A DNA stretch of 64,000 nucleotides from Azolla caroliniana (taxonomy: Eukaryota; Plantae; Polypodiophyta). Where the stretch lies: assembly GCA_043228905.1 (NCBI GenBank), contig JBHGNT010000004.1, positions 19,344,001 through 19,408,000 of the forward strand. Direction: 5' to 3'. The notes under the pieces are model-generated. The model saw only the letters and a list, made by a program, of their open reading frames with translations, did no database searches and was not told where the DNA came from. Every line of letters begins with the position of its first letter. The stretch's first letter is position 1. The position numbers and the translations under genes were made by a program. Below, piece by piece: positions 4,697 to 61,900 of this stretch.

Positions 4697-4769
4697 GCGC
4701 CCGTGGCCTAATGGATAAGGCATTTGACTTCTAATCAAGGGATTGTGGGTTCGAGTCCCACCGGGCGTG
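4697..4769 (+). tRNA. tRNA-Arg(UCU)
   Basis: 73-nt cloverleaf: acceptor GCGCCCG/CGGGCGT, A box TGGCCTAATGG, anticodon arm TTTGA-CT TCT AA-TCAAG, B box GGTTCGAGTCC. Upstream TATAAA and CAA; downstream TTTT terminators. Confidence 0.96.
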
Positions 4770-13442: not shown

Positions 13443-13497
13443 TAATACAATGGTTAAGGATTTGACATGTGTACAACAAGGTCGTGGGTTCAAATCC
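13443..13497 (+). promoter_or_regulatory. tRNA-type A/B-box cassette in the element A LTR (also 18786-18840)
   Basis: TAATACAATGG, 33 nt, then GGTTCAAATCC. Confidence 0.7.
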
Positions 13498-13551
13498 TTT
13501 CGAGTCATAATGTGAGTGTCATGATCCTTTCGATGCATGATGTGATTGTTA

Positions 13552-21742: not shown

Positions 21743-21971
21743 TGACAGGAACTACACGCTCCCTTTGAACAATGCTCGGCCACAACCGAGCCTAGAATAA
21801 AACACAGAAAACAGGGAATGAAACACAACACGATAGAGAGAAGAGTACACAGGATGTTTACGTGGAAAACCCAAAACTCGGGAAAAAACCACGGCTGCCC
21901 ACAGACCGCAAACTATCACTATGTCAGAATGTACAATAAGAAAGCACCGAGGCCACGACCTCGAGTTTGCT
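21743..21971 (-). mobile_element. Fragment of a copia-like LTR replacing the gag end, protease and RT start of element B
   Basis: Starts with TG directly after gag ...RCDN and contains GATGTTTACGTGGAAAACCC..AAAACCACGG..ACTATCACTAT..GAATGTACAAT, as in the LTR at 26332. B resumes at [10 protein letters not shown]. Confidence 0.7.
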
Positions 21972-24769: not shown

Positions 24770-24787
24770 GAACATTCTAGAAGCTTC
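24770..24787. promoter_or_regulatory. Four-unit heat-shock element ~20 bp upstream of the LTR TATA box (also 45438-45455, 59110-59127)
   Basis: GAAcaTTCtaGAAgcTTC matches the alternating nGAAn consensus; TATAAAA at 24808. Confidence 0.7.
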
Positions 24788-29300: not shown

Positions 29301-31741
29301 CCCTTCGAGCGACAATACTCCTGGAACTGCCCCCGGTATTCCCCTCCGTTATCCGCTCGTATCGCTTTCAGCTTCTTGCCGGATTCCCTTTCCACTCTCG
29401 CGTGGAGTTCTTTGAAGACGGACAATACTTGGTCCTTTGTCTTCAACGGTGCTGTCCACAGCTTCCGGCTGTGATCATCAATGAAAGTCACGAAGTACTG
29501 GGCTCCGCCATGTGACTTCGTTTCTACCTGACACACATCAGTGTGCACCAACTCCAATGGTGCGCTACGTCTCGTCGGTGGCCTTGAGTGGAAGGAGGTT
29601 CGGTTCTGCTTACCGGCCAGGCAATCGGTGCACTTCTCCAGATGCACATGCTTCACTGGAATGAGGTTGTCTTCTGCAAGCCTCTTCATCCCCTTCTCGC
29701 TCATGTGGCACAGTCTCTTGTGCCACAGCTCACCGGCAGTGTCGGCTGCCACGTTCAGCTCCTCCGGACGTAGCCGGGAATTCATCAGGTACAGGGTGTT
29801 GACCTTCCGGGGCCGAGCCACTATCAGGCTCCCCTTGCTGAACTTCATGACACCGTTCCGGATGCTACCCGTGTAGCCTTCATCATCTAGCCTCCCGGCC
29901 GAGATCAGGTTCAATCGGACCTCCGGAACGTGTCGCACATCCTTCAACAGCATCTTGCATCCGGTTGATGTCAACAGCCACACGTCTCCTATGCCGGCAA
30001 TCCGGCATGTGCCTTCATTTCCCATCCGGACACAGCCGTGCTCACCGGTTGTGTAGGATGAGAAGTATTTCTTCTCCGGGGTCAGGTGGAACGACGCTCC
30101 GGAATCAACCACCCAGGTCGTCTCTACACCGGCAAGGTTCAGCTCCCTCTCTTCGGTAATGAGCATGATTTCTTCCTCACTTGCCGCGAGTGCCGTCGTT
30201 CCTTTCCGGTCCTGCCCTCGCCGATCCGAACCTCTCCAGTCCGTGGCTCCCCGGTATGCACCGTTTCTCTCCGGTGACTTCTTCGAATCGGTGTCGTCGG
30301 CTCCGTTGTCCTTTCGGTAATGCCGACAATTCTTCCGGAAGTGCCCCGGCTTCCCACAGTGGAAGCATGTTGGCCTTCCTCTTGACTGCGACCGGGTCCC
30401 CGACTTCTCCCGTCTTTGCGGACTCCGGTTCCATTGTCTTCCCCGATCCGATTCGGTAAGCAGCGCCTTCGAGTCGGAGGCCGGTTCTTTATCTCTCCGA
30501 CGCGCTTCTTCGTTCAAAATACTTGTCTTTACCGTTTGTAAGGACAAGTTATCTTCTGTGCAGGAGGTGCTGAGAGTCACCACCAAGTTCTCCCAGCTTT
30601 CCGGCAATGTACACATCAGAATGATGGCTTGCATTGCATCCTCCAGCGGGAACTTGATCGCCGCAAGCTGGTTCACGAATCCCATGAACGTGCTTACGTG
30701 TTCCACCATACTCTCGCCGTCCCGGTACTTGAGGTTCACTATCTTCCTCATCAGGGAGGTCCGGTTCAACGCATTCTTCCTCTCGTAGAGGCCCGACAGC
30801 TTCTTCCACATCTCATATGCGTTGGTGTCGTTTGCCACATGTTGTAGGACGCTTACATCGACATATTGTCGGATCGTCGCTACGGCTTTCCGGTTCAGGA
30901 GCTTCCACTCCGACTCAAGTACCCCCTTCGGTATTTCCGACCTGTCAATCGGTTCGTACAGGTCCCGAACAATCAGAAGATCCTCCATCTTGATCTTCCA
31001 GTCGGCGTAATTCTGCGCATTCAGCACCATCATCCCCGGCTGCCCGCTGCCGCCGCCTTCCATTTTCTGCAGCAGTTCGCTCTGATACCAGTTTGTTGAA
31101 AAACCGTGCTCAGCCAGAGCCGAGGAATAGGATCAACTCACAGAAAACAGGAAATACAACAATGCACGAAGACAATAGAGAGAAGGGCACACTGGATGTT
31201 TTACGTGGAGAAACCCTAAATGGGAAAAAAAAACCACGGGAGTGCAAGACTCCAACTATCACTATACGCGGAATGTACAATGGCGAGCTGCAAGGCGACG
31301 ACCTTGAGCTCGCTGTCCTCGCCACAGGCGGTGGTATTACACAGAGGCGTCGACCTCTTCCTTCCTCCTTCTCTCTCACTCTCTCACGGCTGCTCTCTCT
31401 TCACTCCTCTTGAGTGGAAAAACAGAAAAATGAGTAGCAACACTAAACTGTTTTGCCCTAAGTCATATTTATACACATATGACTTTCGGGCTATTTACAA
31501 ATATAGCCTCAAGGGCTCTTGGCAAACATATTCACAAATATGTCCCCGCATCCGGATCTCTCTCCGGGTACATTCGTCATCCGGCTCCGTAGCCGGGTCT
31601 TCGTCATCCGGCTCCGTAGCCGAGGTCTTCATCATCCGTCTCCGTAACCGGGCACTCTTCATCCTCCGATTCCGTAACCGCAACCGGGCTTGCCGTCATT
31701 CATCTCCGGACATCCCATCCGGAGGGACCGAAATCTCAACA
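26332..31741 (-). mobile_element. Young full-length Ty1/copia element (Tnt1/Tork-like) inserted in the 3' LTR of C
   Basis: TSD ATTAT. LTRs 26332-26980 and 31094-31741 are near-identical. PBS TGGTATCAGAGC (tRNA-iMet) at 31079-31090; PPT AGGGGGAG. Confidence 0.97.
26991..31063 (-). pseudogene. gag-pol: Copia Gag-PR-INT-RT-RH polyprotein with a single frameshift near 28620
   Basis: CFHCGKPGHFRKNC, WVVDSGAS, LWHKRLCH, ADNGGEY, LYVDDML and ALSTTEAEY motifs. Two overlapping ORFs (28574-31063 and 26991-28625). Confidence 0.92.
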
Positions 31742-32136
31742 ATTATGACTCAAAGATTACACCGACTTACGTAGGTTACACGATTAGAGCGCTTTTGTTA
31801 ATTACACGCGTAAGATATAACAGTAATTACAGAACGGAAATCAACATAGAAGTATAAACACCATATGCTCTATTAATTATCCGCTGCGATTACAATGGGC
31901 TCCGGGCCTTTAAATAGGTTTCCGGTCCGTAGTACAAAACGGTGCCTATCGCACCTATTCGGGATCCGTCCGGATCTGGAACGGCATACCGTTTCCAGTC
32001 CGTCCGTCCACACTATGCTTATTTACAACCATACTTAATTAATTCCTTCACTCCGTATTTTGGACTCCTTGCCGGCCGGTAACACATGGCACGCCCGTGG
32101 GACAGTACCTTGTACGTCGAACCCTTCTCGGCCCCT

Positions 32137-41029: not shown

Positions 41030-41899
41030 CCATTAAGCCGTCGTTCGCTGCGAGAAAGCAGGAATCGTGGTCGCCAAACTGTGTTGTTCTCTGACCGGAC
41101 AAGGCCTAACACAAGGTGTCGCGGAGACACTTGACCAAAGGGTGATTACGGCATAGGATTATGACTCAACGATTACACCGACTTACGTAGGTTACACGAT
41201 TAGAGCGCTTTTGTTAATTACAAGCGTAAGATATAACAGTAATTACAGAACGGAAATCAACACAGAAGTATAAACACCATACGCTCTATTAATTATCCGC
41301 TGCGATTACAATGGGCTCCGGGCCTTTAAATAGGTTTCCGGTCCGTAGTACAAAACGGTGCCTATCGCACCTATTCGGGATCCGTCCGGATCTGGAACGG
41401 CATACCGTTTCCAGTCCGTCCGTCCACACTATGCTTATTTACAACCATACTTAATTAATTCCTTCACTCCGTATTTTGGACTCCTTGCCGGCCGGTAACA
41501 GGCGATAGTGTGAAACTTGTGAGGAACATACGAAATCGAGTGTGGTTCTTCTCACGAAATATAAAACAATAATAGTGAAGATACTATTTTAAATAAGTTT
41601 AATATCTTGGTACAAAAAGATGGAGGTCTTGAAGAGCTTTTGAATGCACTTTGCTACATAACAAATGGTCAACTAAGTGTGAAGTTATGTGGGTATGAAG
41701 TTACGCAAAAAGAAAAGAAAAGAAAAGAAAAACAAACCTGTGAGATGTCCCACATAGATAGGACAAACAAGGATCTTACAATATATAAAGCAAAGCTAAA
41801 AGCTAGAATTGTGTGTCTATGTGTGGAGCATAGAGAGTTCAAGGTGACTTGAACTAAGTTAATCAAATGAATGGGTGTGGCCTAGCTACTTGAATCATA

Positions 41900-44100
41900 T
41901 ATTCGAATGTACTTGGCATGTTTCGCATGTGGAAACGAATTGGAGTACATCATTACTTCTCCTTCAATTTCTCGAACGTCGCCCATGTTCCTCTATGACC
42001 TGCCCAGGCACTCTCGTGGAATTCGGTCATTAGCGTCACTTGCTCTTCCTTTCTTCACCACCACTCGACGTGGTATTCCTGTCCTTCTTTTTGGGTGTCA
42101 CCAAAGGAATCCTGCCTTCAAGAAGTGTTGGTAAGTTTTCTTCCGGATTCGTAGGGCCTCCTCTTTCGTCAACGAAGCATCCGTCGTCACTTTTCTTAGG
42201 AATCTGCCGATTAGTAACCACTCCCCTTCGTACTCGTCCTCGTTGAAGGCGTGGAGGGTTAGCTTGCCCTTGTCTTCCGCCGATAGTTGAGCCAGCTTTA
42301 AGAAGTCGAGGGTGACGTCTTCATCTTCCGAAACCATGTCACCTTCATTCTCAAATCTTGCCCTCGACAGCATGTCAGCCATGGTGTTCTTCTTTCCTGC
42401 AATGTGGCGGATCTCTGGGTTTAAAGATTTAATATAAGCGATCCACCTTAGCATAGCTAGATCTGGTGTTGCACATCCTGAGATCATCTCGAGGATTGGG
42501 AGACAATCTATCTCAATTATCGCTTCCGACCCGATTAGGTAGTCATTGTCCGTCTTCACTGCCGACACAATACCCCAAAGTTCTCGCTTGACTTGGGTGT
42601 ATCCTCGTTGCCGTTCGTTGAGAACCTTTGCTCCGAACCGGATGGCATACCACGCATTATCTTCTCCTTCTTGATTGATGACCCACCCGATTCCGGTTGG
42701 GCTCGTATCTACAATCACATAAATCGGCTTCCCTTCGGTATAGTCGGCCTTTCTTAGTGCTGGAGCTTCAAGAAGTAGTTTCTTCAATCTTCGCATCACG
42801 TTTGTATGCTCGCTTCGCCATTTGAACTTCATTCTTTTCTTTAGTAGTTCATATAATGGCTCGGCGACACGAGCATAGTGTGGAATCCAGATATGATAAA
42901 ATGCACATGCTCCAAGGAACCTTCGAACCTTCGTTTGGTTTACGCATTCTTCTTTCATGTCCTGGATTGCGTTCACCTTGGATGGCGAAGGCTTCCGGCC
43001 ATATGCTCCACACAAGTGACCTACCACCAAGAGCTCTGGTTGCCCGAATGCGGATTTTTCTCCCAAAAATGTCAAATTCGCATCTTCGAGCCTTTGAAGC
43101 ACCTTCTCGCAATCTTTCATATGATCCACGACAAACTTTCTACACCCTTCCTTATCTTTCGATTCATCTTTCTCCTCATCCTTACATCCTTTTATCGGAA
43201 TATCATCCAAGAATGGCATTGTGATGTCCGTGATGTAATCCTTCAAGACCTTGTTCATGGAATTCACCATATGAGCCACTGAGTTCGTTGCACCTTGAGG
43301 CAAGGTACACATCCGCATGAACCCGATTGGAGTCCTCATGGTCGTAATGTCACGACTGATGATTGCCAATTGGAATTGGTCATATCTGGAGTAGAGATCG
43401 CCAATGGAGTAGATGGACCGGCCCGCAAACGCCTCGACAATTTTGTCCACGCTCGGACCGATTCCAACATTTCGAATTGTCACCTAGTTGATGAGTTGAA
43501 GATCTTGGATGAATCGCAATGATCCATTCTTCTTCTGCACCGTGAACCACCTATTAGAGTAAGGAGCATTCAATGGTTCCAAAATTCCCATATTCACCTT
43601 CTCCTTTAAGAGCTCGATCAGCTTCGGTAGATGTGCTCTCAGAACTGGTATCGGTTTCAAATTCCAAGGTACATGCGGAACCGTGAAGATTACCATCGGC
43701 TCTATCGTCCTTGGATCAACACATCCGATTTCTCGTGGGAAAAATGCGAAAGCCTTCCCATGTCTCTCAAGCATGTCACGAAATATTTGCTCCTCTTCAG
43801 GGAGAAGGAAATCCTCCCTTCCAACTCGTAGCTTCCCCTTCTTCTCTTCGGTGAAGACATGACCTATTGTCTTCGGATCTCTTAAGCTTGGATCGTTAGC
43901 GACTTCCTTCATCTTTTGCTAGTTATCTTCCGGTAGCGGAACCGCAACTGGCTTGATCTTCCTATCCACCGTTTTATATTTTGTGTTGATGTCAGCTTCC
44001 TTCATCAAGATGTTTCGATGATATTCATCAATGATAGCGTACATGTTGATGGAGCTAACCGAAATCATGCGATGATCGTGTAAATCGCGACGGAGCCGGC
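41900..44100 (-). pseudogene. pol: Ty3/gypsy pol fragment (RT, RNase H, integrase zinc finger) inside element F
   Basis: KYKTVDRKIKPV, CTLPQGATNSV, PFLDDIPIKG, VDTSPTGIG and HESAWAGHRG...C..C, with internal stops. No gag or protease visible. Confidence 0.85.
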
Positions 44101-45802
44101 GAGGCGGCGGCAACCGGTGACCAGTCGGTGACGGAACCGGATCGGGATGCGACGACTAGCCGGTGACGGAACCAGCTAGGGATGCGGACCAAACAAGTGC
44201 AAATCAGATGGATCGGTTGATCGCGGTGCATGGTGTCTTAAAGATATTTGGTGTAATTACAAGACCAAAAGCCTAATAGTATTTTGTGCTTTAGAAAGGG
44301 ACGTATGCAAGACTTGAACATTGCACCTCCAAGTTGAGTCTATAGGCTTACCATTAAGCCAAATCATTTCTTTAGAGATATATTTTTTATCACTATACTT
44401 TTACATGTAATTCTCATACATGAGAGCTTAGATGATGACATGGCAAGCATGCATGTCTTGCACCCTCACATGCACCATATGCATGGGGGCATCTATAAAA
44501 GAGTGAGTGAATTTCGGAAGGGGGCTATGTATGAATCAAAAAATTAAGAGAAGAAAATTCGTTATCCAATTGATAATATATCTTGTTCTTCAAATCTAAA
44601 GTCAAGAGTTCAATCTTAATCTCTCTCAATCTAAAGTCAAGCATTCTATCTTATCTCAATCTCTCTCTCTCTTTCAATCTATGTTAAATACTTTCTCGCT
44701 AAAGCTAGTGCAAACTTCGAATCCTTCCGGTCCAGAACCCCGGCGGTTCCGCCTCACGATCCGCACATAGTGGCAGATCTTCACGACAACGTCAACACAG
44801 ATAAACCCTTTTCGATCACTCTATGGGCGTGACCCTTGGCTCCCACTAGAATCGTCCATTGACGTCCATTCCAAACCTGCCAACATGGATAGTGCCACTT
44901 GGGGGATCAATCTCCAACAAATGCTCCCCCTCCTTCGACAAGCCAACTCCCAAAACCTTCAAGTTGCACAACAACGCTAGAATCGACATTACGATGTGGG
45001 TCAAATTACCCCGAATTATGCTTATTGTCACGGACAAGTATAATAGAGCAGAGCGAAGAAAAGACTAGAAAACAAGAGAGAGGAAAAGAACAAGAACTTA
45101 ACTTATAGAATCCGTAACTGGTGTTGTTCACCTCGATTAGAATCAAGGTGCACTTGAGTATTTATACAAGAAGGTAGGGCTATGTAAGCCAATTAGAAAT
45201 AAGAGTATGCATGAGGATGCATGCAATAGAGAATGCATGAGAATGAGTGCAAGCTAGAAATGAGGATGCATGCAAGCTAGGAACTTCCAATTGTCATGAT
45301 ATGGAAAGACTCGAACCCATGACCTTATACTACATGGGTCGAGCTCTTGACCATTAGACTATACATTGTAATACATAGAATATTATTTTCATTCATGTTT
45401 TATTATAGAAAATTGATGTATATTCCAGATTTCTCTGGAACATTCTAGAAACTTCAGGAGTATTCCTTAGAACACTATAAAAGGAGGCACAAGGCATTAT
45501 TTCGAACCAAATCGGTTCAACGCCAGTCTTAAGCCTCCTAGCTACTGTACATTTTCTTCACATAATATATATCTTTTCTTATCATCACTCTCTCTCTCTC
45601 TCTCTCTCTCGATCTCTCTCTCCCTCCCTCTCACTCACTCTTTCCTCCTCTCGAGAGTTCTTCACCTCTCTTAGTACTAATACTTCTTTTAGTACTAATT
45701 CCTTCTCTGTCTTAGTACTGTTCTTGACAGTTTGAACCAATTTGCCTACCTTCTGTCTCTCTCATTTCCTACTAATCTCTTATTCCTCTTTTCTTTCATC
45801 CG

Positions 45803-48800
45803 ATGGCCACTGTTAGCGCTAAAGAATATCAATCTGTTTTCTCGGAATTTCAATGCTTGAAAGAGAAGTTCCATGCTTTGGAACAAGAAAACCAACGGTT
45901 GCTGGGGGATCTTCAACAAATCTCCTTAGAAAAGCAGCAAACGCAACAACAGCATGGGGAACTTGCGTTACGCGTGCAACAACTCGAAGCAACGATCGTA
46001 GCGATGGAACAACAAGGGCCTGGAACACAAGGGATTCATAAAGAACCCAAGATTGGCCTTCCCACGAAGTTTGATGGAACGCGATCGCAGTTTACAGGGT
46101 TCCTTAACCAGGTACGATTAGTTATTCAAATGCATCCTTCCCGGTATCCCACCGATGCATCACGAGTGGGTTTAGTAGGCACTTTGTTAAGTGGCTCAGC
46201 GTTGGCATGGTTCGCTCCACTATTAGAAAAGGAATCCCCGTAACTCAACAATTTTGAAGAGTTTCTAGGTGAGTTTAAAGCATGTTTCGGAGATACTGAC
46301 AGCATCAGGACCGCAATCAACAAAATTCGGCGATTACGCCAAGGTGATCGTCCAGCCTCCGCATATGCTGCAGATTTTCGCCTACTCGCCGCCGATATCC
46401 CTTGGGATGATCAAGCGTTGATGGAGCAATTCCGTTATGGTTTACGCAACGACATCAAGGATTTACTCTTGACCTTCCCCAAAGAGCCAAAGTCCTTAAC
46501 AGAAGCAATCAGTCGCGCGGTGAGATGTGACAACTGCCTCTTTGAGCGATGTTCAGAACGACAACTACAGATACCGAGGGCAAGATCAGAGCCCACCTAC
46601 GCCTCAGTGGTAGCAAGACCTTTTCCGAGGGAGTCATATAATGCGAATACTTCGACTCCGATGGAGATTGACACACACATCGTCGAGGGCCATTATCCGA
46701 AGAAGAAAAGCAGCGACGCCGTACAAATCGACTATGTCTTTACTGTGGTGGATCAGGACATATCGCAATAAATTGCCCCCATAGGCCAAGAAGACAGGTA
46801 AACCAAATAGTCACTAGTTCTAATTGTACTAAACCCGAGCCTATTTCAGTAGCGATATCTGATAGTCCTAATAGTACTAATAGCCCAGATCTAGCTAACA
46901 GATTTGATGTCCTTAGTCAGTTAGAAGAAGAGTTAAACGACTAAGTCCAGCCAAAATAGGAGCCGATTGGTTGGACAACCCTAGATCTGTGCAACCCATT
47001 AGTGGTTCCATTCCCTCTAAGCAAGTTAGTGATGTGTTCGTAGCCCAAGTAATAGTTAGTACTATAAGTACCCCTCCAGTACATGTCCTAACACTCCTAG
47101 ATTTCGGAGCTAACTCTTGCTTTATGGATCAGAAATTTGCTCAAGCTCATAAGATATCCCTAAGAAAACTCCAGTGTCCAGCCTCTGTAGTAGTCATTGA
47201 TGGACGTCCCATTGCTTCCGGAAATATCATAGAAGAGTTAGAGCCCATTAATATTGTCCTAGATAACTTAGCATGTGTAGTGTCATTTAATATTATTAGT
47301 ATCCCAGAACATCCCATAGTTTTAGGATTACCGTGGTTCGAGTTACATAACCCAGACATAGATTGGAGAACAAGAGAAATCCGGTGTCGACAAACCCAAG
47401 GGTCAACTCAGAAGATGGCAACCATTTCGCTACGTCAGTTGCGTAAAGAAGGGCACAAGGAGGAAATGTTCCTCTTTGCAATATCAGTAAATCCCTCCAG
47501 CACCACTAAAGAAGGATCCACCGTTCAACTTCCCGAGAAGTATCGTCATTACGCCGATGTGTTCGATAAAGTACAAGCCAACACACTTCCTCATCATCGA
47601 CCGTACGATTGCCCCATCGATTTACAACCGGGAAAAGAGCCGCCATGGGGACCAATCTACAATTTGTCACCAACCAAGTTGGAAGTCCTTCGGGCCTATA
47701 TAGAGGAGAATTTGGAAAATGGTTTCATCCGGCATTCGAAATCTCCAGCCGGCGCGCCCATTTTCTTCGTCAAGAAAAAGGATGGATCGCTTCGTCTTGT
47801 TGTAGATTACCGTGGCCTGAATAAGGTTACAATCAGGAATAGGTATGCTCTTCCCCTTATCTCAAGTCTTTTAGAACGGATCAATGGTGCCAGATTCTTC
47901 ACGAAGATCGACTTACGGGGGGAGCATATAACCTCGTACGGATCCGACCAGGAGACAAATGGAAGACTGCGTTTCGCACCAGATATGGGCACTTCGAGTA
48001 TACGGTCATGCCGTTCGGCCTCACTAATGCACCGACAGTCTTCCAACACATGGCTAATGATATATTCCGAGATCTATTGGATGATTGTTTGATCATCTAT
48101 TTGGATGATCTACTGGTTTATTCAAAGACCCAAGAAGAACATGATTCTCATGTACTATTAGTACTAAAACGACTTCGAGAACATGGTCTGTATGCAAAGC
48201 TGGAAAAATGTAGTTTCGGGTGCAACCAAGTGGAATTTCTTGGCTACATCATTTCGTCAGAAGGCATCTCCATGGACCCAGCTAAGGTCAAAACGGTGGT
48301 AGAATGGCAGACTCCACGTTCGGTGCGGGATGTGCAATGCTTCGTAGGCTTTGCCAATTTTTACCGGAAGTTCATACAAGATTACTCAAAGATCGTTCTA
48401 CCTCTCACACAACTTACCAGGAAGGGACAACCGTTCATTTGGTCTGAAGAAACGGACGTGGCTTTCGAGAGTCTTAAAAACGCATTTACATTGGCTCCAA
48501 TTCTAGCTCATGTCGATCTGGAAAAACCATTTATTATCGAAGTTGACGCATCGGATTTTGCATTGGGGAGCATTCTGTCACAACAGGGGAATGATGAGAA
48601 GCTACATCCTGTGGCTTTTCACTCACGCAAGTTTGACGCCGCCGAAATCAACTACGAAATTCATGATAAGGAGCTATTGGCAATAGTGGATTCTTTTAGG
48701 CAATGGAGGCATTTTCTGGAGGGATCCTCTCATCCGGTCACCGTATTTAGTGACCACAAGAACCTTGCCTACTTTCGGGATGCTCGTGTGTTGAATCAAC

Positions 48801-50492
48801 GTCAAGCTCGGTGGGCCCACTTCCTCACGCGTTTCGACTTCAAAATTACATATCGTCCGGGGAAGCACCAAGGGAAGGCAGATGCATTATCACGACGTTC
48901 GTATCTAGGACCTCGTCCTGGCGAGCCAGCTTTTGATAACCAAAAACAAGTCATCTTGGGACCGGCACGACTACAAGCAACAAAGATCTTTGACATGCCC
49001 ATGGATTCCCGCGTTATCGATACCATACGCGAAGACTTGAAGAAAGATGCGTTCGCCCAAGCTATACTAGCACAAATTGATCCCTCTGGAGCGTCGTGTT
49101 CACAGTCGCAACCACCAAGTACTGACTATCGGCAATTCAAATACCATGATGGATTACTCTTCTTTAAAGAACTTTTGTATGTTCCTAATGGTTCTTGCCG
49201 CCTTCAAGTAGTACAAAACTGTCATGACACATATACAACTGGGCATTTTGGTAGTACTAAAACACTACATTTAGTACCACGATCATTCTGGTGGCCCTGT
49301 ATGCGACAATTTGTCGAGGATTTTGTTCGGACTTTTGATACATGCTGTAGAGCGAAAATGCCAAGGCATCATCCATATGGTTTATTAGAACCATTACCAA
49401 TTCCAAGCAAGCCGTGGCAATCCATTGCTCTAGACTTCATCACAGATCTTCCAGTCTCTAAGGGGTTCAATGCGATTCTAACGGTGGTCGATCGATATAC
49501 GAAGATGGCTCATTTCTTGCCATGTACTAAGGAGATCTCCAGTGAAGACACTGCCGAAATTGTCATGCGTGAAGTATGTCGGCATCATGGACTTCCCGAT
49601 AGTATCATCAGCGACCGTGAACCCCAGTTCGTGTCAAAATTCTGGAAGCACCTTTTTAACATGCTCAAGGTCAGTTGTAACCTCTCCTCCGGCTACCACC
49701 CACAAACCGACGGCCAAGCCGAACGAACCAATCAAACGTTGGAGGAGTATCTACGGTGCTTTCTCAGCTATCATCAGGATGACTGGGCAGATATTCTCCA
49801 CTTCGCCGAATTTGCCTATAACAACTCTTATACAGGATGTCACCCCTGGTGGTGTGTACTTGAAACCCCAGAGGTGTCCACAAATCCTTGCGCAGAGGAT
49901 CGTTTGGAGAGGTTACACAAGATACAAGCGGATTTATCTACTCATCTCCAACAAGCTCAACAAACACACAAGGTTTATGCGGATCGTCATCGACTCCCAT
50001 CTAGTTTTAACATTGGAGATCGGGTATGGCTACTCCGATGACACATCAAGACGACTCACCCATGCGAGAAGTTGGATTATCGGCGATTAGGTCCTTTCCG
50101 TATTATCGGAAAGATTAATGATGTCGCTTTTCGTCTTGATCTACCTCCACAACTTCGGATACATTGTGTTTCATAGTTCTCTCCTTGAACTCTATCAAGA
50201 AAGCACCATCCCAAGACGTATTACACAGCCTCCACCCCCGATCAAGCTTGAAGATGGACCTGAGTACGAGGTTGCCGCCATCCTTGATTCCAAGCTTGTT
50301 CGCAACAAGCTCTACTATCTAGTCGACTGGCTAGGATATAGTCCCAGCGAGCATACTTGGGAACCGATAGAGAATCTCACCAATGCTCGTGCTCTTCTTG
50401 AAGACTTCCATCGTCAATATCCAGACAAACCGGGTCCTCAATCCAAAATGACTCGTTACACTCGTCGTTTTAAAAGGGGGATAGTGTCATGA
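45803..50492 (+). pseudogene. gag-pol: Element D gag and pol with several stops and frameshifts
   Basis: Gag MATVSAKEY..LPTKFDG; protease LLDFGA (mutated); YLDDLLV; integrase; chromodomain YEVAAILDS. Split across ORFs 45803, 46418, 46971, 48008 and 50118. Confidence 0.9.
46932..46984 (+). other. Predicted -1 ribosomal frameshift signal (also 17150-17202 on minus and 60613-60665)
   Basis: G_TTA_AAC, 6-nt spacer, stem GTCCAGCCAA/TTGGTTGGAC and second stem TAGG/CCTA. Pol is open in the -1 frame. Confidence 0.8.
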
Positions 50493-50499
50493 TATGGCA

Positions 50500-50554
50500 A
50501 GACTCGAACCCATGACCTTATGCTACATGGGTCGAGCTCTTGACCATTAGACCA
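50500..50554 (-). promoter_or_regulatory. tRNA-type Pol III internal promoter in the LTR U3 of the B/D/E family (also 20130-20184, 24639-24693, 45307-45361, 58979-59033)
   Basis: A box TGGTCTAATGG, 33 nt, then B box GGTTCGAGTCT. Spacing is identical to the tRNA-Arg gene in this window. Confidence 0.75.
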
Positions 50555-50943
50555 TACATTGTAATACGTAGAATATTATTTTCATGTATGTTTTATTATA
50601 GAAAATTGATGTATATTCCAGATTTCTCTGGAACATTCTAGAAACTTCAGGAGTATTCCTTAGAACACTATAAAAGGAGGCACAAGGCATTATTTCGAAC
50701 CAAATCGGTTCAACGCCAGTCTTAAGCCTCCTAACTACTGTACATTTTCTTCACATAATATATATCTTTTCTTATCATCACTCTCTCTCTTTTCTTATCA
50801 TCACTTCGACGAGTTTCGTGGGTGGGTTCTTTTGGTGTGCTCGTCCCGTGCTACAAAATGCCGATGTGATTGCGACACACACAAAACTCGGCTAAGTCTC
50901 GAACCCATTTATTTTACCTTCTTTTTTTCTTATTGACACCACA

Positions 50944-51756
50944 ATGACGTCTAGACGGACTAAGGAACTTAAGGATATACAAGACGAGGCTATAAGTAAG
51001 GAGGACTTTTTAGATATGTTTAATCGTTTAACAAAAATAGAGATGGATATGAAAAAATGGGTGAAAGACACCGAAACCTACAAGAAAAAAGATAGAGAGG
51101 AAAAAGACGCCCTCAAGGCCGAAATAGAACAACTTAAAGTAGAAAACATCGACCTTAAAAAACAACTTAAGGACATCGAGGTATCTCGAGAAGACGGTGA
51201 AATATCCTCTATAGAGGATATAAAGGACGAAATTAAAAAAGTTAAAGAGGAAGTTAATAATAACATAGAGTTAGCTAAAACGGGTTGGGTAGATGTGGTT
51301 AAAAGAAACATTAAAAAAGAAATAAAAGATGAAAATATTGTTAACACCACCCTTGAAGAAGAGAAAATGCGTCAGGCCCGACGCTTAAATGTACGTGTCA
51401 CTGGGCTCAAGGAAGGTGCATCCCCAAATGAGGACGCACAAACACTTGGGAAAATGTTAGGGTACACAGAGGCCCTACCTATCACCAAAGCATGGAGGGC
51501 CGGGCGTGACACAACTAGGAAGAGAGCCTTAGTCCTTCAATTTAAAGACTTAGACTCTAGAATCACTTTCTTTAAGAAGAGACCAATCCTTCGAGGAATG
51601 GATGGGGACCCCATCTATCTCGATGAAGACCTCACTAAGATGCAAATTGAGCATCGCAAGAGTTGTATGCCACGAGTTATGCAAGCTCGTAAAGAAGGCC
51701 ATCGCGCCTTTTACCGAGACGGGCGAGTGATCATAAATGATCCCACTACTAACTGA
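50944..51756 (+). CDS. LINE ORF1: coiled coil plus RRM-like nucleic-acid-binding protein
   Basis: 270 aa; coiled coil followed by RRLNVRVTGLKE...ALVLQF...IYLDEDLT. Confidence 0.85.
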   Translation: MTSRRTKELKDIQDEAISKEDFLDMFNRLTKIEMDMKKWVKDTETYKKKDREEKDALKAEIEQLKVENIDLKKQLKDIEVSREDGEISSIEDIKDEIKKVKEEVNNNIELAKTGWVDVVKRNIKKEIKDENIVNTTLEEEKMRQARRLNVRVTGLKEGASPNEDAQTLGKMLGYTEALPITKAWRAGRDTTRKRALVLQFKDLDSRITFFKKRPILRGMDGDPIYLDEDLTKMQIEHRKSCMPRVMQARKEGHRAFYRDGRVIINDPTTN

Positions 51757-51792
51757 CGGCGTGTGGCCCATGTGACAGAAAATGCACTTAGG

Positions 51793-54700
51793 ATGACCCT
51801 ATGGAATTGTAATGGCGCACTCTGGGCACACCCCGGCCGCCTAGAGGAGATACTAAAGGTATCTGATATACTCTTCTTGGTAGAAACACATCAGAGCCCA
51901 AATAGAGGACTCCCACGGGTCGAAGGATTCCGTTGGGAGTCCGCTTTTAGACAAACCTCACGTCGACACACTACTAGGGGATCTGGAGGTGTCGCGATAC
52001 TATTTCGTAGAGAGCTACATAATAGGATAGAAATAATGAAGATAGACCCAGAAGCTCGTTTTATGTGGGTGAAAGTCTCCACAAGCAAAGACCATGCAGT
52101 ATTTTTCGCCATTTGTTACTTTCCCCCAAAAGGATCCCGTTATAATATTAGTGGCTTGACGAGATTAGTCGATGAAGGAATGCCACATGGGCCTTCTCCA
52201 TACGAACCCCTATCGGATGACATAATCCGATATTCTTCCCAAGGAGAAGTATTTCTTGTAGGAGACTTCAATGCGAGAACCCAATCCCGACAATGCACAG
52301 TATTTCAGATGAATAGAAACCTAGAAATGGTAAATGTTGATCCTTTAGACATAGGCACCACACGTAGATCAAAGGATCAAGGTGCGGACGCCACGAGCTT
52401 TGGCCATCACCTGCTCGAACTTGGCAGTCGGCACCAGATGGTCATATATAATGGTTTAGCTAAGTGGCCGGGCTCGGAAGAGCTCACATGTTTCCCACAT
52501 GGAGGAGGGGAAAGCACAGTTGACTATCTAATAGGGCGCCCGACAGCTACCCACTTGATTAACTCCTTCCGAGTGGCCCCATGCCCTATTGGCGCAGACC
52601 ATAGCTTCTTATACTTCGAGCTAAAATGTGATATCTCTAAGGTCACCAAGTCTAGTCAACCATGCCATCACACCACAATACATTTCACACATGAGCTCTC
52701 TGACATATACTCTCAACATGTTCAGGCCCATCTCCCCTCTATTGATCCCTCTCTACCGTTAGAAAGCCTTAGTACAAAACTCACACACATCCTTCACTCC
52801 GCAGCAGCTAGCAGTTTCCCATATACAAAACACTCAAATCTAGGTAGATCAGGATCAATGCCACAAAATAAATGGTATGACGAGGATTGTAGGGACCTAC
52901 ATAGACAACTTACAGTATCGCAACTCAATGGTAGTATTACCTCCACACAAGCTCGCAAAGAAATGCGTAAGATGACACGTCGTAAGAGACGAGCGTGGGA
53001 GGCATCCCAATACTGGGAACTCTACCATATGCTCATGAGTAGCGATTGCGCCACGGCATGGAAGAGACTACGGGAGCCAAGACCACAAACACCCATCGAA
53101 GATCCCGAAACTTGGCACACATATACAGAGAGACTTTACCAAATCCCAAACCAACCACCTTTTCCAATGCCTTCCACACCCCGGCCTACCACGGGGACAC
53201 TTTTCACGACCTCTAGGGTCATGAAGGTCATAAAGAAATTACAACATAGGAAGTCCATGGACCACACAGGATTGCGAGCAGAACACATTATATATGCGAG
53301 AGAGTGCCTAGCTCCCTTGCTAACTCTAATCTTCAATCGTGCCCTTGCGGAGGGTTTTCCACCACAGTGGACTATGAATACAGTGACCCCCATACATAAA
53401 GGGGGGGACCCCATGGACCCAAATACATATAGGACCATTATGATAGGCCATACCCTTGCTAAGTTATATGGTGCAGTAATGGAAGCAGAGCTTAGCGACT
53501 ACATGGAGACCCTAAACCTTCGTGCACCTGAACAAGCTGGCTTTAGACGAGCCTTCTCCACTATTGATCACATCTTCACACTTAGATGCCTAATTGACCA
53601 AACTAGGGCTCGCAAGAAGAGATTATATTGTTGTTTTGTGGACTTCCGCAAAGCCTTTGACACAGTCCCTAGAGATCGGTTGTCTGATAGACTTAAAAGC
53701 TTGAGGATACCAGATGATATGGTATGGGCCATCTACGCACTATATGAACAAGTGTCCGGGTGTGTCCGATGCCCAGGTGGCCTATCCAATCGTTTCATTA
53801 GCACTATTGGTGTAAAACAAGGTTGCCCCCTATCACCGACGCTTTTTGGGATTTACATTGATGAGATCACAGATTTTATTGCTCGTGAAGGAGGCACCGG
53901 AGTGGTCCTTGGGGATACGCAGGTTCGTATCTTGCTCTATGCGGATGACATAGTTTTGCTCTCTGAATCCGAACACGACCTACAGAGGCACCTCAATGCC
54001 TTAGATGACTTTTGTGTACAACGAGGATTGGTAGTGAATCTAGGGAAAACGAAAGTCCTTATCTTCCACACATCGGCCCAAGTTAGAGCTAAGTGTCACC
54101 TAACTATCTCCCATAGCCCAGTCGAGGTGGTTGGATCGTACGTATATCTCGGAGTCACTTTTAGTGCCCGCTCAGGTAAATTTTCGATGACACAGGCAGC
54201 GAAGGATAGACTCACGAGAGGACATGCATCCCTCTCACTCCTAGAGAGACAATGCCACCAAGCACACTTTCAAGAGCCACGGACTAAAGGGTGGCTCTTT
54301 GACTCATTAGTGACCCCCTCCCTCATGTATGCATCTGCGGTTTGGGCTCCAGGATTACCATCCTTCATGTGGACGCAATTAGAGAGACCATTGGTGATGA
54401 TGCTATCACGCCAACTCCGAAGCAAATCGACTGTACCACATGACATTATTAGGGCCGAGTTCACGTTACCCCCAATGCTAGTAGAGGCACTTTTTCAACT
54501 TGTAGTCTTTATTGATAGGATACATAGCCAACCACATGATAGAATATCTCATCAAGCCTTTAAGGCCTCTCGATCATTGTATGAGTCCGGCTATACTAGC
54601 TCATGGTATGGCATGATGGTGACTTGGCTTCTTGCGAATGGTCTAGACATTAATAACCTACCTCCCCTTAGGTACAACCACACGAGTGATAACACCTTAA

Positions 54701-55494
54701 TCTCTCATGAGAACCGCAATAAAGTAATACGCCAAGAAATATGGCAAATTTACACTCGGTGTAAATGGATCACCCCACTAGAGCCACTCCCATCTAAAAT
54801 GTCGTACTATAAGAAACACTTCATGCACTTCTCTGAGTTAGGTTTTATCACACGGCCAAAATATCTAGATGTATTCTTACCACATGCACTAAGGGTTGCC
54901 ATTGGACAACTTAGAATATCATCTCACCAACTTGAGATTGAAAATGGCCGTACTAGTGGAGTCCCTAGGGAGGAAAGGATATGTAGGTTATGTCACATAG
55001 AGATAGAGGATGAGTACCACTTTACTTGCAAGTGTCCAACCTATGCCGAGATAAGGGCAAAATACCAAGACATACTTGGTCCGTCTCCCACCCTCCCCAA
55101 ACTATTAGATACTCTAGATATAAAGAAATTAGGCAAATACATTCTAGAACTAAAACAACACAGAGAGAATAAATTACAAAATGTTGACAATAATGCTGCT
55201 AATGATCACGAACATGTAACAAATGCAGTTTTTCAGGAACCTGAGGAGACAACGAATGCCGACACACTTGCACCACTCGGCCTTTCCATTGATGAGGCAG
55301 AAAACCAGAGAAGAACCAGACGTCCTCGGGTGCCGGGTTTCAAAACAACTCAACGTGATGTGGACGCAATATTGAAAATAAGGGAACGTGAGCTACACCG
55401 CCTAGAAGCCATGGCTAGGGCACTCTCTACATTGGAACCCACATCAAGACCCTTTGACCCCCCACTTCTTTTCGAGAGGCTTGGGTGGAAATAA
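51793..55494 (+). CDS. LINE ORF2: AP endonuclease, reverse transcriptase and CCHC zinc finger
   Basis: WNCNG, LVETH, GDFNA, STVDY and ADH (APE); EQAGFR, FVDFRKAFD, GVKQGCPLSP and LYADD (RT); CRLC..EDEYHFTCKC. First ATG at 51793; the frame is open from 51757. Confidence 0.95.
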   Translation: MTLWNCNGALWAHPGRLEEILKVSDILFLVETHQSPNRGLPRVEGFRWESAFRQTSRRHTTRGSGGVAILFRRELHNRIEIMKIDPEARFMWVKVSTSKDHAVFFAICYFPPKGSRYNISGLTRLVDEGMPHGPSPYEPLSDDIIRYSSQGEVFLVGDFNARTQSRQCTVFQMNRNLEMVNVDPLDIGTTRRSKDQGADATSFGHHLLELGSRHQMVIYNGLAKWPGSEELTCFPHGGGESTVDYLIGRPTATHLINSFRVAPCPIGADHSFLYFELKCDISKVTKSSQPCHHTTIHFTHELSDIYSQHVQAHLPSIDPSLPLESLSTKLTHILHSAAASSFPYTKHSNLGRSGSMPQNKWYDEDCRDLHRQLTVSQLNGSITSTQARKEMRKMTRRKRRAWEASQYWELYHMLMSSDCATAWKRLREPRPQTPIEDPETWHTYTERLYQIPNQPPFPMPSTPRPTTGTLFTTSRVMKVIKKLQHRKSMDHTGLRAEHIIYARECLAPLLTLIFNRALAEGFPPQWTMNTVTPIHKGGDPMDPNTYRTIMIGHTLAKLYGAVMEAELSDYMETLNLRAPEQAGFRRAFSTIDHIFTLRCLIDQTRARKKRLYCCFVDFRKAFDTVPRDRLSDRLKSLRIPDDMVWAIYALYEQVSGCVRCPGGLSNRFISTIGVKQGCPLSPTLFGIYIDEITDFIAREGGTGVVLGDTQVRILLYADDIVLLSESEHDLQRHLNALDDFCVQRGLVVNLGKTKVLIFHTSAQVRAKCHLTISHSPVEVVGSYVYLGVTFSARSGKFSMTQAAKDRLTRGHASLSLLERQCHQAHFQEPRTKGWLFDSLVTPSLMYASAVWAPGLPSFMWTQLERPLVMMLSRQLRSKSTVPHDIIRAEFTLPPMLVEALFQLVVFIDRIHSQPHDRISHQAFKASRSLYESGYTSSWYGMMVTWLLANGLDINNLPPLRYNHTSDNTLISHENRNKVIRQEIWQIYTRCKWITPLEPLPSKMSYYKKHFMHFSELGFITRPKYLDVFLPHALRVAIGQLRISSHQLEIENGRTSGVPREERICRLCHIEIEDEYHFTCKCPTYAEIRAKYQDILGPSPTLPKLLDTLDIKKLGKYILELKQHRENKLQNVDNNAANDHEHVTNAVFQEPEETTNADTLAPLGLSIDEAENQRRTRRPRVPGFKTTQRDVDAILKIRERELHRLEAMARALSTLEPTSRPFDPPLLFERLGWK

Positions 55495-55679
55495 AATTAG
55501 GCTTAGTGTATAGTCACTTTCGAGTATACTACATATTGTACACTACTAGAACTCTTTTAGTTTAAGTTCTATTTTTTTTACTTAATTTTATTTTTAGTTA
55601 TGATGACTGGATAAATACTCTATTGTTGTAAACCAATTGTCTCATGGGCCAAATTTGGCCTTAGAAGACGTTAATACAC

Positions 55680-55716
<37 letters not shown>

Positions 55717-56184
55717 ACTCACTCTTTCCTCCTCTCGAGAGTTCTTCACCTCTCTTAGTACTAATACTTCTTTTAGTACTAATTCCTTCTCTGTCTTAGT
55801 ACTGTTCCTGACACCAATGTTCAATCCACACTACATGAAGTTGGATTTGGTATAAGGTGGTAGGGTTGCCCAATAGAGACCATGAGGTCTTGGGTTCAAG
55901 CCCTACCTTCCTCCATGGCATATGTATATGACATTATCCTCCCTGTAAGGCCGCCTCCTAACACCCACGGTCGGTTTATGAGGGTATCATTGATGAAAAG
56001 CGCGTTGATGAAAAGTGTGAATTGTCTTTGACACATTTTGTAAATGTGTAACTGGTTCCCATATGGCGTCCGAAAGAGGATAGCCTTTCCATAAGATCAA
56101 GTATTGAAGTCTTCATCGACGCAAGTGGGAGTCGAGGATCCAGTCAACCTCGTACTCCTTTCCACGAGCAGCGATGGAGGAGGT

Positions 56185-58963: not shown

Positions 58964-61900
58964 TGTCATGATATGGCAAAACTCAAACCCATGACCTTAT
59001 GTTATATGAGTGGAGCTCTTGACCATTATATCATCTATTGTAATACGTAGGATATTATTTTCATTTAAGTTTTATTATAGGAAATTAATGTATATTCCAG
59101 ATTTCTCTAGAACATTCTAGAAGCTTCAGGATTTCTCCTGAGAACACTATAAAAGAAGGCACTAGGCATTATTTTGAAAGAAATTGGTTCAACGCCAGTC
59201 TTAAGCCTCATAGCCCTTTTGTACTTATTCTTCACATAATATATCCTCTGTTATCATCATCTCTCTCTCTCTCTCATCCTCGCTATCTCTCTCTCTCTCT
59301 CTCTCTCTCCTCTTCTCTCTTCCTCTCTCGGGAGTCTTACGCAGTCCCGTCCTCTTAGTACTAATAGTACTTCACTTTTCTAGTACTAATTCTCTCTCTG
59401 TTTTAGTACTATTCCTGACAGTTTGAACCAATTTCTCCTCAAGTCTACTTGTTGTTTTTGCTCATCCTCCTACCCTTTTTCCTATACTATGGCTATTGTT
59501 AGCGCCCAAGAATATCAATCCGTTTTCTCCGAGCTACAGTGTCTCAAAGAAAAATTTGTTGCCTTGGAACAAGAAAACCAACAGTTGATAGGGGATCTAC
59601 AACAAATCGCTCTCGAAAAACAACAAACGCAGCAACAACATGGGGAGTTAGCGTTACGGGTACAACAACTCGAAGTAGCGTTGCAACAACAAGGATCAAG
59701 TCCCCAAGGAATTCATAAAGAGCCCAAGATTGGACTTCCTGTGAAATTTGATGGAAAACGATCACAATTCAGGGGATTCCTTAATCAGGTACACTTAGTC
59801 ATCCAAATGCATCCTTCCCGAGTCAGCTTAATAGGCACGTTGCTTAGCAGCTCAACCTTGGCATGGTTCGCTCTGCTTCTAGAAAAACAATCGCCCTTGC
59901 TTAATAACTTTGAAGACTTTATTAGTGAGTTTAAAGCTTGCTTTGGAGATATCGACAACATCCAAACAGCGATCAACAAAATCCGACGACTGCGTCAAGG
60001 CGATCGTCCACCCTCTGCCTATGAAGCAGATTTCTGTCTACTCGCCTCAGATATCCCCTCGGATGATTAGGCACTAATCGAGCAGTTTTGCTATGGCCTA
60101 CGAAACGATGTCAAAGATTTACTTTTAACCTTCCTCGAAGAACCAAAGTCTCTTACGGAGGCAATCAGTCAAGCAGTCCGATGTGACAACCGCCTTTTCG
60201 AACGGCGTTCGGAACATCAATTACAAATACCACACTCTAGGCCGGATCCCACTTACGCCTCAGTCACGGCAAGACCGTTTGCACGCGACGTACCTCAAGC
60301 AAATACTCCGACACCGATGGAGATTGACACTATGCATCGACGTGACCCATTATCGGAAGAAGAAAAGCAACGACGACGTGCAAATCGATTATGTCTTTAT
60401 TGTGGTGGACCAGGGCATATCGCAATCAATTGTACCCATAGGCCAAGAAGACAGGTAAATCAGATCTTAGCCTATACTAAACCCGAGTCAATTCTTCCCT
60501 TAGGAGTATCTGATAGTATTAATAGTACTAATAGAGTATCTAATAGTATTAATATTACTAATAGCCCAAGTATCTCAAACCAATTTGAAATCCTTAGTCA
60601 ATTAGATGAACAGTTAAACGGTTGAGTCCAGCCAAAATAGGAGCCGTTTGGTTGGACAACCCTAGATCTGTACATCCCATTAGTGGTTCCATTCTCTCCA
60701 AGCAACTTAGCAATGTGTTCCTAGCCCAAGTCATGGTTAGTACTAAAAGTACTCCCCCAGTACACGTCCTAGCACTTCTAGATTCCGGAGCTAATTCCTG
60801 TTTCATGGATCAAAATTTTGCCCAAACTTCTTAGATATCCTTAAAAAAACTTGCTTGCCCCACATCTGTAGTAGTCATTGATGGTCGTCCCATTGCTTCC
60901 GGGAATATTGTAGAAGAGTCAGAACCCATTCAAGTTGTCCTAGGTAGTTTTGTGTGTGTAGTATCATTTAATATAATTAGTAGTCCAGAGCATCCCTTGT
61001 CCTGGGATTACCTTGGTTTGAATTACATAATCCAGACATAGATTGGAGAACAAGAGAAGTCCAATATCGACAACCCCAAGAATCTACTCATCATGTTTTG
61101 ACCATTTCACTCCATCAATTACGTGAAGAAGGACACAAGGAGGCAATGTTCCTATTTGCAATATCAGTACATCCTTCCAGCACTAATAAGACGGAATCCC
61201 TAGTGCAATTTCTAGCAAAATATCATCCTTATGCCGATGTATTTGACAAGGTAAAAGCCAGTACTCTTCCTCATCATCATCCCTATGATTGTCCCATCGA
61301 TCAACAACCAGGAATAGAGACACCATGGCGACCAATTTACAACTTGTCATCCACCAAGTTAGAAGTCCTTTGAGCCTACATAGAGGAAAACTTGGCAAGA
61401 GGGTTTATTCGTCATTCAAAATCTCCAGCCGATGCACCCATCTTCTTTGTCAAGAAGAAAGATGGCTCACTTCGTCTCGTTGTTGATTACCACGTCTTGA
61501 ATAAAGTCACCATCCGGAATAGGTATGCACTTCTTGTTATATCAAGTCTTTTAGAGCAAGTTAATGGTGCCAAGTTTTTTACAAAAGTCGATATATGAGG
61601 AGCGTATAACCTTGTGCGGATTCGACTGGGAGATGAATGGAAGACCGCCTTTCGCACGCGGTATGGGCATTTCGAATATACTGTTTTGCCGTTCGGTCTA
61701 ACCAATGCACCCGCAATCTTCCAACACATGGCAAATGATATATTCAGAGATCTCTTGGATATCTATTTGATCATCTCTCTGGATGATCTATTGATATATT
61801 TGAAGACCCAGGAAGAGCACGATTCTCATGTACTATTAGTACTAAAACGACTCCGCGAGAATGGTCTTTATGCCAAGCTAGAAAAATGTAGCTTTGACTT

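Follow-up and report, generated by a model that had tools for sequence, protein, structure and literature searches.

Promoters of small RNA genes have been found inside the long terminal repeats (LTRs) of retrotransposons, but only in tiny non-coding elements, the groups Cassandra and Helenus, where they are thought to drive the element's own transcription through RNA polymerase III (Pol III). Here we describe a tRNA-derived module in the LTRs of much larger, protein-coding elements, found in a 64,000-nt stretch of the genome of Azolla caroliniana (assembly GCA_043228905.1, contig JBHGNT010000004.1, positions 19,344,001 to 19,408,000 of the forward strand; hereafter the window, with positions counted from its first nucleotide). 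The best copy lies at the U3 edge of the 3' LTR of an element called D, and related elements in the window (A, B and E) carry intact or decayed versions of it.

The locus was brought to attention by a sequence-only reading that compared it with Cassandra, a terminal-repeat retrotransposon in miniature (TRIM). The comparison is apt, in that both have a small-RNA-gene promoter within a plant LTR that has been conserved for a long time. The Cassandra promoter, however, is derived from 5S rRNA (a type 1 promoter), and Cassandra is non-autonomous and carries the promoter in the sense orientation (PMC10886601). A closer published analogue is Helenus (TRIMp3), a group of TRIMs described from rust fungi, animals and Selaginella, in which LTR sequence is derived from a tRNA (Kojima 2024, PMC10886601); according to the same source, part of a tRNA is contained in 'not a few LTRs' of Repbase. 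A primer-binding site, a polypurine tract and a duplication of 5 bp are present in Helenus elements, which have been proposed to originate from the insertion of a short interspersed element (SINE) or a tRNA into an LTR (PMC10886601). As in Azolla, a tRNA-derived stretch within the LTR has conserved A and B boxes while the tRNA itself is mostly non-functional (PMC10886601).

The differences from Helenus concern size, coding capacity and orientation. Helenus elements are non-coding and 0.3-1.3 kb long, whereas A, B, D and their relatives are about 5.5 kb long, encode gag, protease, reverse transcriptase, RNase H, integrase and a chromodomain, and have their own TATA-driven RNA polymerase II (Pol II) promoter. 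The Helenus module has the sense orientation, and Pol III would accordingly transcribe the element, whereas the Azolla module is antisense and sits at the U3 edge. A 10-nt B-box search of the published Helenus consensus set returned 79 sense B boxes and no antisense ones, and 13-nt probes detected no sequence shared between the module and that set.

Two further comparisons bear on what the module might do. SINE2 elements have a tRNA-related head that keeps only the A and B boxes, much as the module does, but the module has no body related to long interspersed elements (LINEs), no tail and no target-site duplication, and it moves only as part of an LTR. The tRNA-gene (tDNA) and extra-TFIIIC (ETC/COC) boundary sites of yeasts and mammals, like B2 SINE boundaries (PMC8136502), consist of B-box DNA that acts through binding of TFIIIC and not through RNA, a mechanism that is only proposed for the module. 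Those sites are host loci or SINEs, and nothing comparable is known to have been shown for a plant LTR. Likewise, no description of an antisense tRNA-like module in autonomous elements was found in the literature searched, the coverage of which was incomplete.

Since the Azolla elements are coding and the module points the wrong way, and since it is nevertheless conserved, the module must do something other than make element RNA. The reading that we prefer, and to which we give an even chance, is that it may be a selected docking site for TFIIIC/Pol III, inherited from one tRNA-derived insertion and most likely serving as a boundary.

The module in element D

The features of D that matter for this reading, together with the one genuine tRNA gene of the window, are as follows.

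45292-55813, plus strand: element D, with target-site duplication CCAAT; its 3' LTR is split by a LINE at 50791-55679
45292-45729, plus strand: 5' LTR of D
50485-50790 plus 55680-55813, plus strand: 3' LTR of D
50472-50484, plus strand: polypurine tract of D, abutting the LTR start (TGTCATGA) at 50485
50482-50561, minus strand: tRNA-derived module in the 3' LTR of D, the best copy of the sequence-only reading; profile match of 67 bits
4697-4769, plus strand: genuine tRNA-Arg(TCT), used only as a comparator (TGGCCTAATGG, 33 nt, GGTTCGAGTC)

When 50485-50560 is read on the minus strand, an A box (TGGTCTAATGG, 50544-50554) is followed after a 33-nt gap by a B box (GGTTCGAGTC, 50501-50510), just as the sequence-only reading had it. 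The spacing equals that of the tRNA-Arg at 4697, again in agreement with that reading. The layout is that of a type-2 Pol III promoter (an A box of the TRGCNNAGTGG kind and a B box of the GGTTCGANTCC kind, 30-60 nt apart), and the D and A modules both fit the consensus put forward in the sequence-only reading exactly, at 33 nt. With a gap of 28-36 nt allowed, this consensus has five matches in the window (the tRNA-Arg, two in A and two in D), against 0.01 expected from Markov shuffles, and the resemblance of the module to a tRNA is therefore not a matter of chance: the module is derived from a tRNA. It begins 16 nt inward of the LTR edge, right behind the polypurine tract. The pol reading frame of D stops at a TGA that is itself within the 3' LTR.

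Is the module still a tRNA gene, or perhaps part of a SINE? ARAGORN found only the tRNA-Arg in the window and no tRNA in the module copies or in 13 related loci, and the Rfam tRNA model gave no match to an isolated 111-nt module stretch, even at E <= 10. With these negatives and no cloverleaf, a functional tRNA gene is ruled out. A tRNA-derived SINE insertion is ruled out as well, as the sequence-only reading had argued: around the module there is neither a poly(A) tail nor a duplication, the LTR sequence being continuous on both sides, there is no LINE-like body, and the module occupies the same position in paired LTRs.

A conserved RNA fold is likewise rejected. In an alignment held in register with a real tRNA, the acceptor stem is paired in 47% of cells and the anticodon stem in 40%, compared with 35-48% when the partners are slid past each other. 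The T stem (72% paired, mostly by G-U) and the D stem (65%) do exceed chance, and only the inner T stem stands clear overall. The z-scores of the minimum-energy folds are near 0 in most lineages, and the one strong hairpin (-31 kcal/mol, z = -4.5) is confined to the B/D/E family: its spacer repeats the T-arm side imperfectly and in inverted orientation, which lets the module fold into one long hairpin. A 10-bp version of this inverted repeat occurs in A (AAGGATTTGA with TCAAATCCTT). The lack of a conserved RNA fold favors a site that works as DNA bound by protein over a structured RNA.

Conservation of the boxes

The module was compared among 12 lineages, each with one representative, in an alignment anchored on a B-box-like motif. 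The mean pairwise identities are as follows.

B box: 0.78, a partly circular figure in view of the anchor
The eight bases ahead of the B box (AGGTC and the beginning of the T stem): 0.61
A-box/D-loop block: 0.37, the block being clear in nine lineages and lost in three
Spacer: 0.31
Flanks: 0.30-0.37

The boxes are thus far better kept between lineages than the spacer, one of the comparisons that the sequence-only reading had proposed as a check. The A-B spacing is 32-33 nt in nine lineages, despite unrelated spacer sequences. Outside the circularity of the anchor, the AGGTC and AATGGTTAAGG blocks, neither of which served as an anchor, are also conserved, and an unanchored MAFFT alignment comes out in register with the real tRNA. 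When LTRs are compared with one another by unanchored blastn, few conserved blocks are collinear, and the B-box and A-box blocks are two of them. The rest comprise the LTR terminus, the TATA box and the arrays of heat-shock-like elements, along with the R start/self-primer and the primer-binding site. The heat-shock-like arrays, of the TTCTAGAACATTCTAGAA type, stand upstream of the TATA box in the U3 of A, D and two relatives (L003 and L091; in D, for example, at 45430-45460) and are conserved between lineages.

Could this pattern be the residue of a single ancient tRNA or SINE insertion in U3, which hitch-hiked neutrally and whose boxes look conserved simply by shared descent? A single origin is indeed probable, the cloverleaf has decayed, individual genomic copies decay freely, and poly(A) RNA reads (about 60 per run) give no support for expression. 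A neutral relic should, however, decay evenly. The integrases of the carriers differ by up to 40%, and spacer and flanks are at random identity (about 0.31), yet the B box stands at 0.78 (the anchored value), AGGTC at 0.61 and the spacing is fixed. For this reason we regard a neutral relic as unlikely.

The conserved blocks could also resemble a B box and no more, and serve as an ordinary cis element of Pol II transcription or of reverse transcription, for instance a plus-strand priming signal or the site of a transcription factor. The location would suit such an element, in U3 and upstream of the heat-shock-element arrays and the TATA box, and so would the conservation of AGGTC beyond the needs of a B box. 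On the other hand, two blocks at exactly the tRNA spacing, with base-for-base D-loop and T-loop consensus and in register with a real tRNA, are hard to account for without tRNA ancestry, and the distances to the polypurine tract and the LTR end are not fixed. We consider an ordinary cis element of this kind quite improbable.

Copies in the window and their decay

Self-comparison of the window, together with Pfam searches, gave the following map of its other LTR elements.

13088-13559 and 18402-18902, minus strand: LTRs of element A
20115-25052, plus strand: element B
From 58964, plus strand: element E
11852-12676, minus strand (orientation judged from the termini): solo LTR
45027-45291 plus 55819-55934, minus strand: older LTR H, with U3 edge at 55934, inside which D has inserted
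26331-31742, minus strand: element G, of the Ty1/copia type
41083-41500 and 26252-26331 plus 31742-32084, minus strand: LTR copies of element F, a different Ty3/gypsy element, the second copy split by G

A profile hidden Markov model built from the modules was used to scan the window. The profile recovers the true tRNA and copies that had no part in its training, namely the one in H and those of two relatives (L005 and L086). The module copies of the window, beyond the one described above, are these.

45292-45368, minus strand: module in the 5' LTR of D; A box with one transition (TAG for TGG), B box intact
20114-20191, minus strand: decayed module in the 5' LTR of B; A box G>A, B box GGTTCAAGTC
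24621-24700, minus strand: decayed module in the 3' LTR of B; A box G>C, B-box position C61 changed to A
58964-59040, minus strand: decayed module in the 5' LTR of E; B box GGTTTGAGTT, with two changes from the consensus
13441-13511, plus strand: module in the 3' LTR of A; B box GGTTCAAATC, 63 nt from the U3 edge at 13559
18784-18854, plus strand: module in the 5' LTR of A
12509-12583, plus strand: module of the solo LTR, followed by a five-T run; distance to the U3 edge about 100 nt
55845-55909, plus strand: module in the older LTR H, the insertion target of D; absent from profile training, profile E = 5e-5
44297-44369, minus strand: orphan module copy with good D-arm and T-arm hairpins; profile match

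The module is antisense to its host element in every copy here. Element A lies on the minus strand, and its plus-strand modules are therefore antisense to it. They align without gaps with the D module and with the tRNA-Arg, and their greater distance from the LTR edge (63 nt) is due to a short duplication. In both LTRs of A, B and D the module is in register, and it is inherited as part of the LTR. The distance from module to LTR end is variable, from 16 to about 100 nt.

The inventory differs in part from that of the sequence-only reading, which had the cassette in all five B/D/E copies and equivalents of it in A, G, F and the solo LTR. The homologous stretch is present in five of five B/D/E copies, but both boxes are found only in the two D copies, the B 5', B 3' and E 5' copies having one or two box substitutions each. 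A and the solo LTR do carry equivalents. In the G and F LTRs, by contrast, consensus, mismatch and profile searches came up empty, with no A+B combination on either strand at up to three mismatches and no match to the profile hidden Markov model. Nor do the carriers amount to five independent LTR families, as the earlier wording of five LTR families would suggest: A and B/D/E are related, with internal regions about 67% identical, and belong to one integrase clade, and G and F are without the module. Two copies were missing from the earlier list, those at 55845-55909 and 44297-44369. The latter, the orphan, lies about 300 nt upstream of a truncated reverse transcriptase-RNase H fragment (42098-43483) on the same strand, and may represent either a fragment of another LTR or a SINE-like unit that stands on its own.

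Resident copies lose the boxes with age. Within the window, the D pair (LTRs 97.7% identical) and the A pair (93.5%) retain them, while the older B pair (88.8%) has lost them in both copies; the older genomic copies B and E alike have broken boxes. Since the D and A pairs keep the boxes and the older B pair has lost them, selection acts during replication of the element and not on copies already resident in the genome.

The host elements and their relatives

The internal regions of A, B, D and E are 66-76% identical to each other, and the four elements have the same primer-binding site, GTTTGAACCAATTT, listed here for D.

45730-45743, plus strand: primer-binding site GTTTGAACCAATTT of D, complementary to the predicted R start at 45509-45521

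Comparison of GTTTGAACCAATTT with tRNA 3' ends gave no match. The site is instead complementary to AAATCGGTTCAAC, about 30 nt downstream of the TATA box, the transcript start being inferred from the position of that box. In one relative (L002), the primer-binding site is GTTTGAACCGGAAT (at about 4453-4467) and the R start is ATTCCGGTTCAAC (at about 4293-4307). Primer-binding site and R start thus co-vary, CCAATTT going with AAATCGG in D and CCGGAAT with ATTCCGG in L002. Because the primer-binding site complements the R start and not a tRNA, self-priming is indicated. The R start also forms a hairpin with the end of U3.

Self-priming bears directly on the possibility that the module works on the sense strand. 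The complement of the D loop and T arm in the genomic RNA would then anneal to a cellular tRNA and aid priming, strand transfer or packaging, and yeast Ty3 reportedly has a bipartite 5'-3' primer-binding site (Gabus et al. 1998). The place of the module where U3 begins, within the 3' untranslated RNA, would fit such a role, the orientation is always complementary to a tRNA, and the conserved blocks are just the D loop and the T arm. Against this stand the self-priming of the elements, with a primer-binding site that complements the R start and co-varies with it between lineages, the generic character of the conserved bases, which are promoter boxes with no long match to any one tRNA, and the variable distance to the polypurine tract (16 to about 100 nt). 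The most attractive version, a Ty3-like second (3') primer-binding site, is removed by the self-priming and is rejected: the 5' primer-binding site is a self-primer co-varying with R, and it is complementary to no tRNA 3' end. Pairing of the element's primer-binding site with RNA of the module is also rejected, the two sharing only a generic GGTTCAA. A sense-strand role is, all told, improbable.

To what group of elements does the module belong? The chromodomain domain PF00385 is found in the homologues, a chromodomain-like sequence is readable just upstream of 50470 in D, and the nearest metagenome relatives look fungal-type. In their chromodomain integrase, their primer-binding site complementing the transcript start and their fungal-type relatives, the elements resemble the Tcn1/Tf1-sushi self-priming chromoviruses (PMC6317226; Novikova et al. 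2010, PMC2864245), and Neumann et al. (2019, PMC6317226) reported self-priming of the Tf1 type in the plant Tcn1 clade. A tRNA-like U3 module, on the other hand, is mentioned in neither PMC6317226 nor PMC2864245.

Relatives were gathered by a protein look-up with the RNase H-integrase-chromodomain protein of A as query, and contigs encoding homologues were fetched. All nine relatives at 59% amino acid identity or above (L001/2, L003, L084, L085, L086, L090, L091, L092 and L093) carry the antisense module directly behind the polypurine tract. They come from at least three independent data sets, two apparently of other species. Among 80 more distant metagenome chromoviruses (37-57% identity), the module occurs only in L005, which has the B box alone, and in L061, a member of the B/D/E family. 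The B-box unit is tandemly duplicated and the A box absent in L086 and L093, both from other data sets.

In a quick maximum-likelihood tree of the integrase region, which placed A and the B/D/E representative, the ten carriers, all with the module in the same place and on the same strand, form one clade with a Shimodaira-Hasegawa-like approximate likelihood-ratio (SH-aLRT) support of 99. The sister group of this clade consists of L005, with its partial module, and of L004 and L006, with none. The module is missing from 76 of the 77 sampled outgroup chromoviruses, the other 74 rows of the tree all being without it. The solo LTR, H and the orphan at 44297-44369 have no coding region by which they could be placed. 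The grouping of the carriers in one integrase clade is consistent with a single origin followed by retention. On the sequence evidence, then, the module is a part of the U3 of one self-priming, Tcn1/Tf1-like chromovirus clade. The sequence-only reading had spoken of Ty3/gypsy lineages that keep a tRNA-derived module at the LTR edge; the elements are indeed protein-coding and the module is antisense and at the U3 edge, but 'Ty3/gypsy lineages' is better put as one chromovirus clade.

Proposed origin and function

How might such a module have arisen, and why would it be kept? The cassette is probably the remnant of a tRNA or of a tRNA-derived retro-copy. It would have inserted in reverse within a few dozen bases of the U3 start, in the common ancestor of one self-priming, Tcn1/Tf1-like chromovirus clade of Azolla and relatives, and would since have been transmitted with the LTR. 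The fold of the tRNA has decayed, while the B box and the adjacent AGGTC of the variable loop were kept, along with the 32-33 nt spacing and, more weakly, the D loop/A box. Almost all the rest of U3 has turned over around these promoter parts. What remains would be a DNA site that selection maintains because it benefits the element, most likely by docking TFIIIC and possibly the whole Pol III complex. Boxes and spacing that are kept without a fold, at a variable distance from the LTR end, are what marks a type-2 Pol III promoter or a TFIIIC site, the heads of SINEs being an example.

The module always has the same geometry, outermost in the 5' LTR, facing outward and upstream of the element's Pol II promoter. 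From this position it would separate flanking chromatin from the Pol II promoter with its heat-shock elements and TATA box. The most plausible role would be that of a portable boundary or anti-silencing site, for an element steered into heterochromatin by its own chromodomain. A short outward Pol III transcript would be either a by-product or a second function. Binding of TFIIIC/Pol III and the barrier role are what we infer from the arrangement and conservation of the boxes.

Several points weigh against this docking and boundary reading. The B-box figure is partly circular on account of its anchor, as noted above, and the A box is degenerate in L005, L086 and L093. AGGTC, though conserved, is to our knowledge not required by TFIIIC; its conservation hints at some further constraint on the module. 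A run of at least four T within 60 nt downstream of the module is present in only seven of the 12 lineages, the run of D being the polypurine tract read on the complementary strand, and a defined Pol III transcript is therefore not assured. Two poly(A) RNA runs compared with 45100-50790 gave about 60 reads each (90-95% likeness, about 1x), too few for starts or strand, and the comparison also included one rRNA-depleted contig set and one set that is probably DNA. Finally, the barrier function of tDNA is established, as far as we know, in yeasts and mammals and not in plants.

Factors docked at the module could also serve integration. The elements Ty3, Tj1 and DGLT-A integrate at real tRNA genes. 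By analogy, the module might act as a homing beacon, drawing Pol III factors that are recognized by the integrase of the family, so that new copies would land just upstream of it and nest safely in their kin. The insertion of D into H supplies one such case. Read in the Pol III direction, its insertion point (the CCAAT duplication at 55814-55818) lies upstream of the A-box region in the H module, by about 27 nt. Pol III-directed integration in yeasts and Dictyostelium typically takes place at such a position, and a rough post hoc estimate puts the chance of at least one such case in the window at about 2%. Yet this is one case among six or seven insertions in the window, no insertion lies upstream of the true tRNA-Arg, and the chromodomain already supplies a targeting mechanism. 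As an explanation of the module, homing is very unlikely.

A broader formulation would have an autonomous, Pol II-driven lineage domesticate a tRNA-gene promoter as a portable, putative TFIIIC/Pol III dock, used as a built-in chromatin boundary by which a heterochromatin-seeking chromovirus could remain expressible and/or as a homing signal for nested integration of kin, in what would be the first such case in protein-coding plant elements. We put this forward tentatively, as a possibility with somewhat less than an even chance. If the docking and boundary reading is correct, and the module does bind TFIIIC, LTRs would scatter boundary-type sites through a plant genome. The elements would then offer a natural system for studying tDNA-type insulation in plants, as well as the escape of chromoviruses from the heterochromatin to which they are targeted. 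In genome annotation, the modules will inflate the counts of tRNA pseudogenes and SINEs.

Other features of the window

The window holds several other insertions and duplications. One LTR copy of F is the insertion site of G, which is flanked by a 5-bp duplication, and the F LTR continues for 81 nt (26251-26331) beyond G. The LINE at 50791-55679, in the CT-microsatellite part of the 3' LTR of D, contains an open reading frame of 1243 amino acids (endonuclease plus reverse transcriptase) preceded by one of 270 amino acids. Element B has a perfect 360-bp tandem duplication (20322-20675 and 20682-21035) that covers the last part of the 5' LTR together with the primer-binding site and leader.

Element F contains tRNA-related sequence of another kind. 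A stretch of its coding strand that separates a polypurine run from one of the LTR copies (32087-32127) holds the T loop and 3' end of a tRNA-Arg(TCT) in the sense orientation, including CCA and with one base missing. Since this segment is outside the LTR and in the sense orientation, it differs from the antisense U3 module. The other LTR copy of F is accompanied by an ordinary primer-binding site of the TGG type (41058-41082). The window also contains two PPR genes (2444-4549 and 7284-9293), the best named relatives of which are from ferns, with up to 50% identity.

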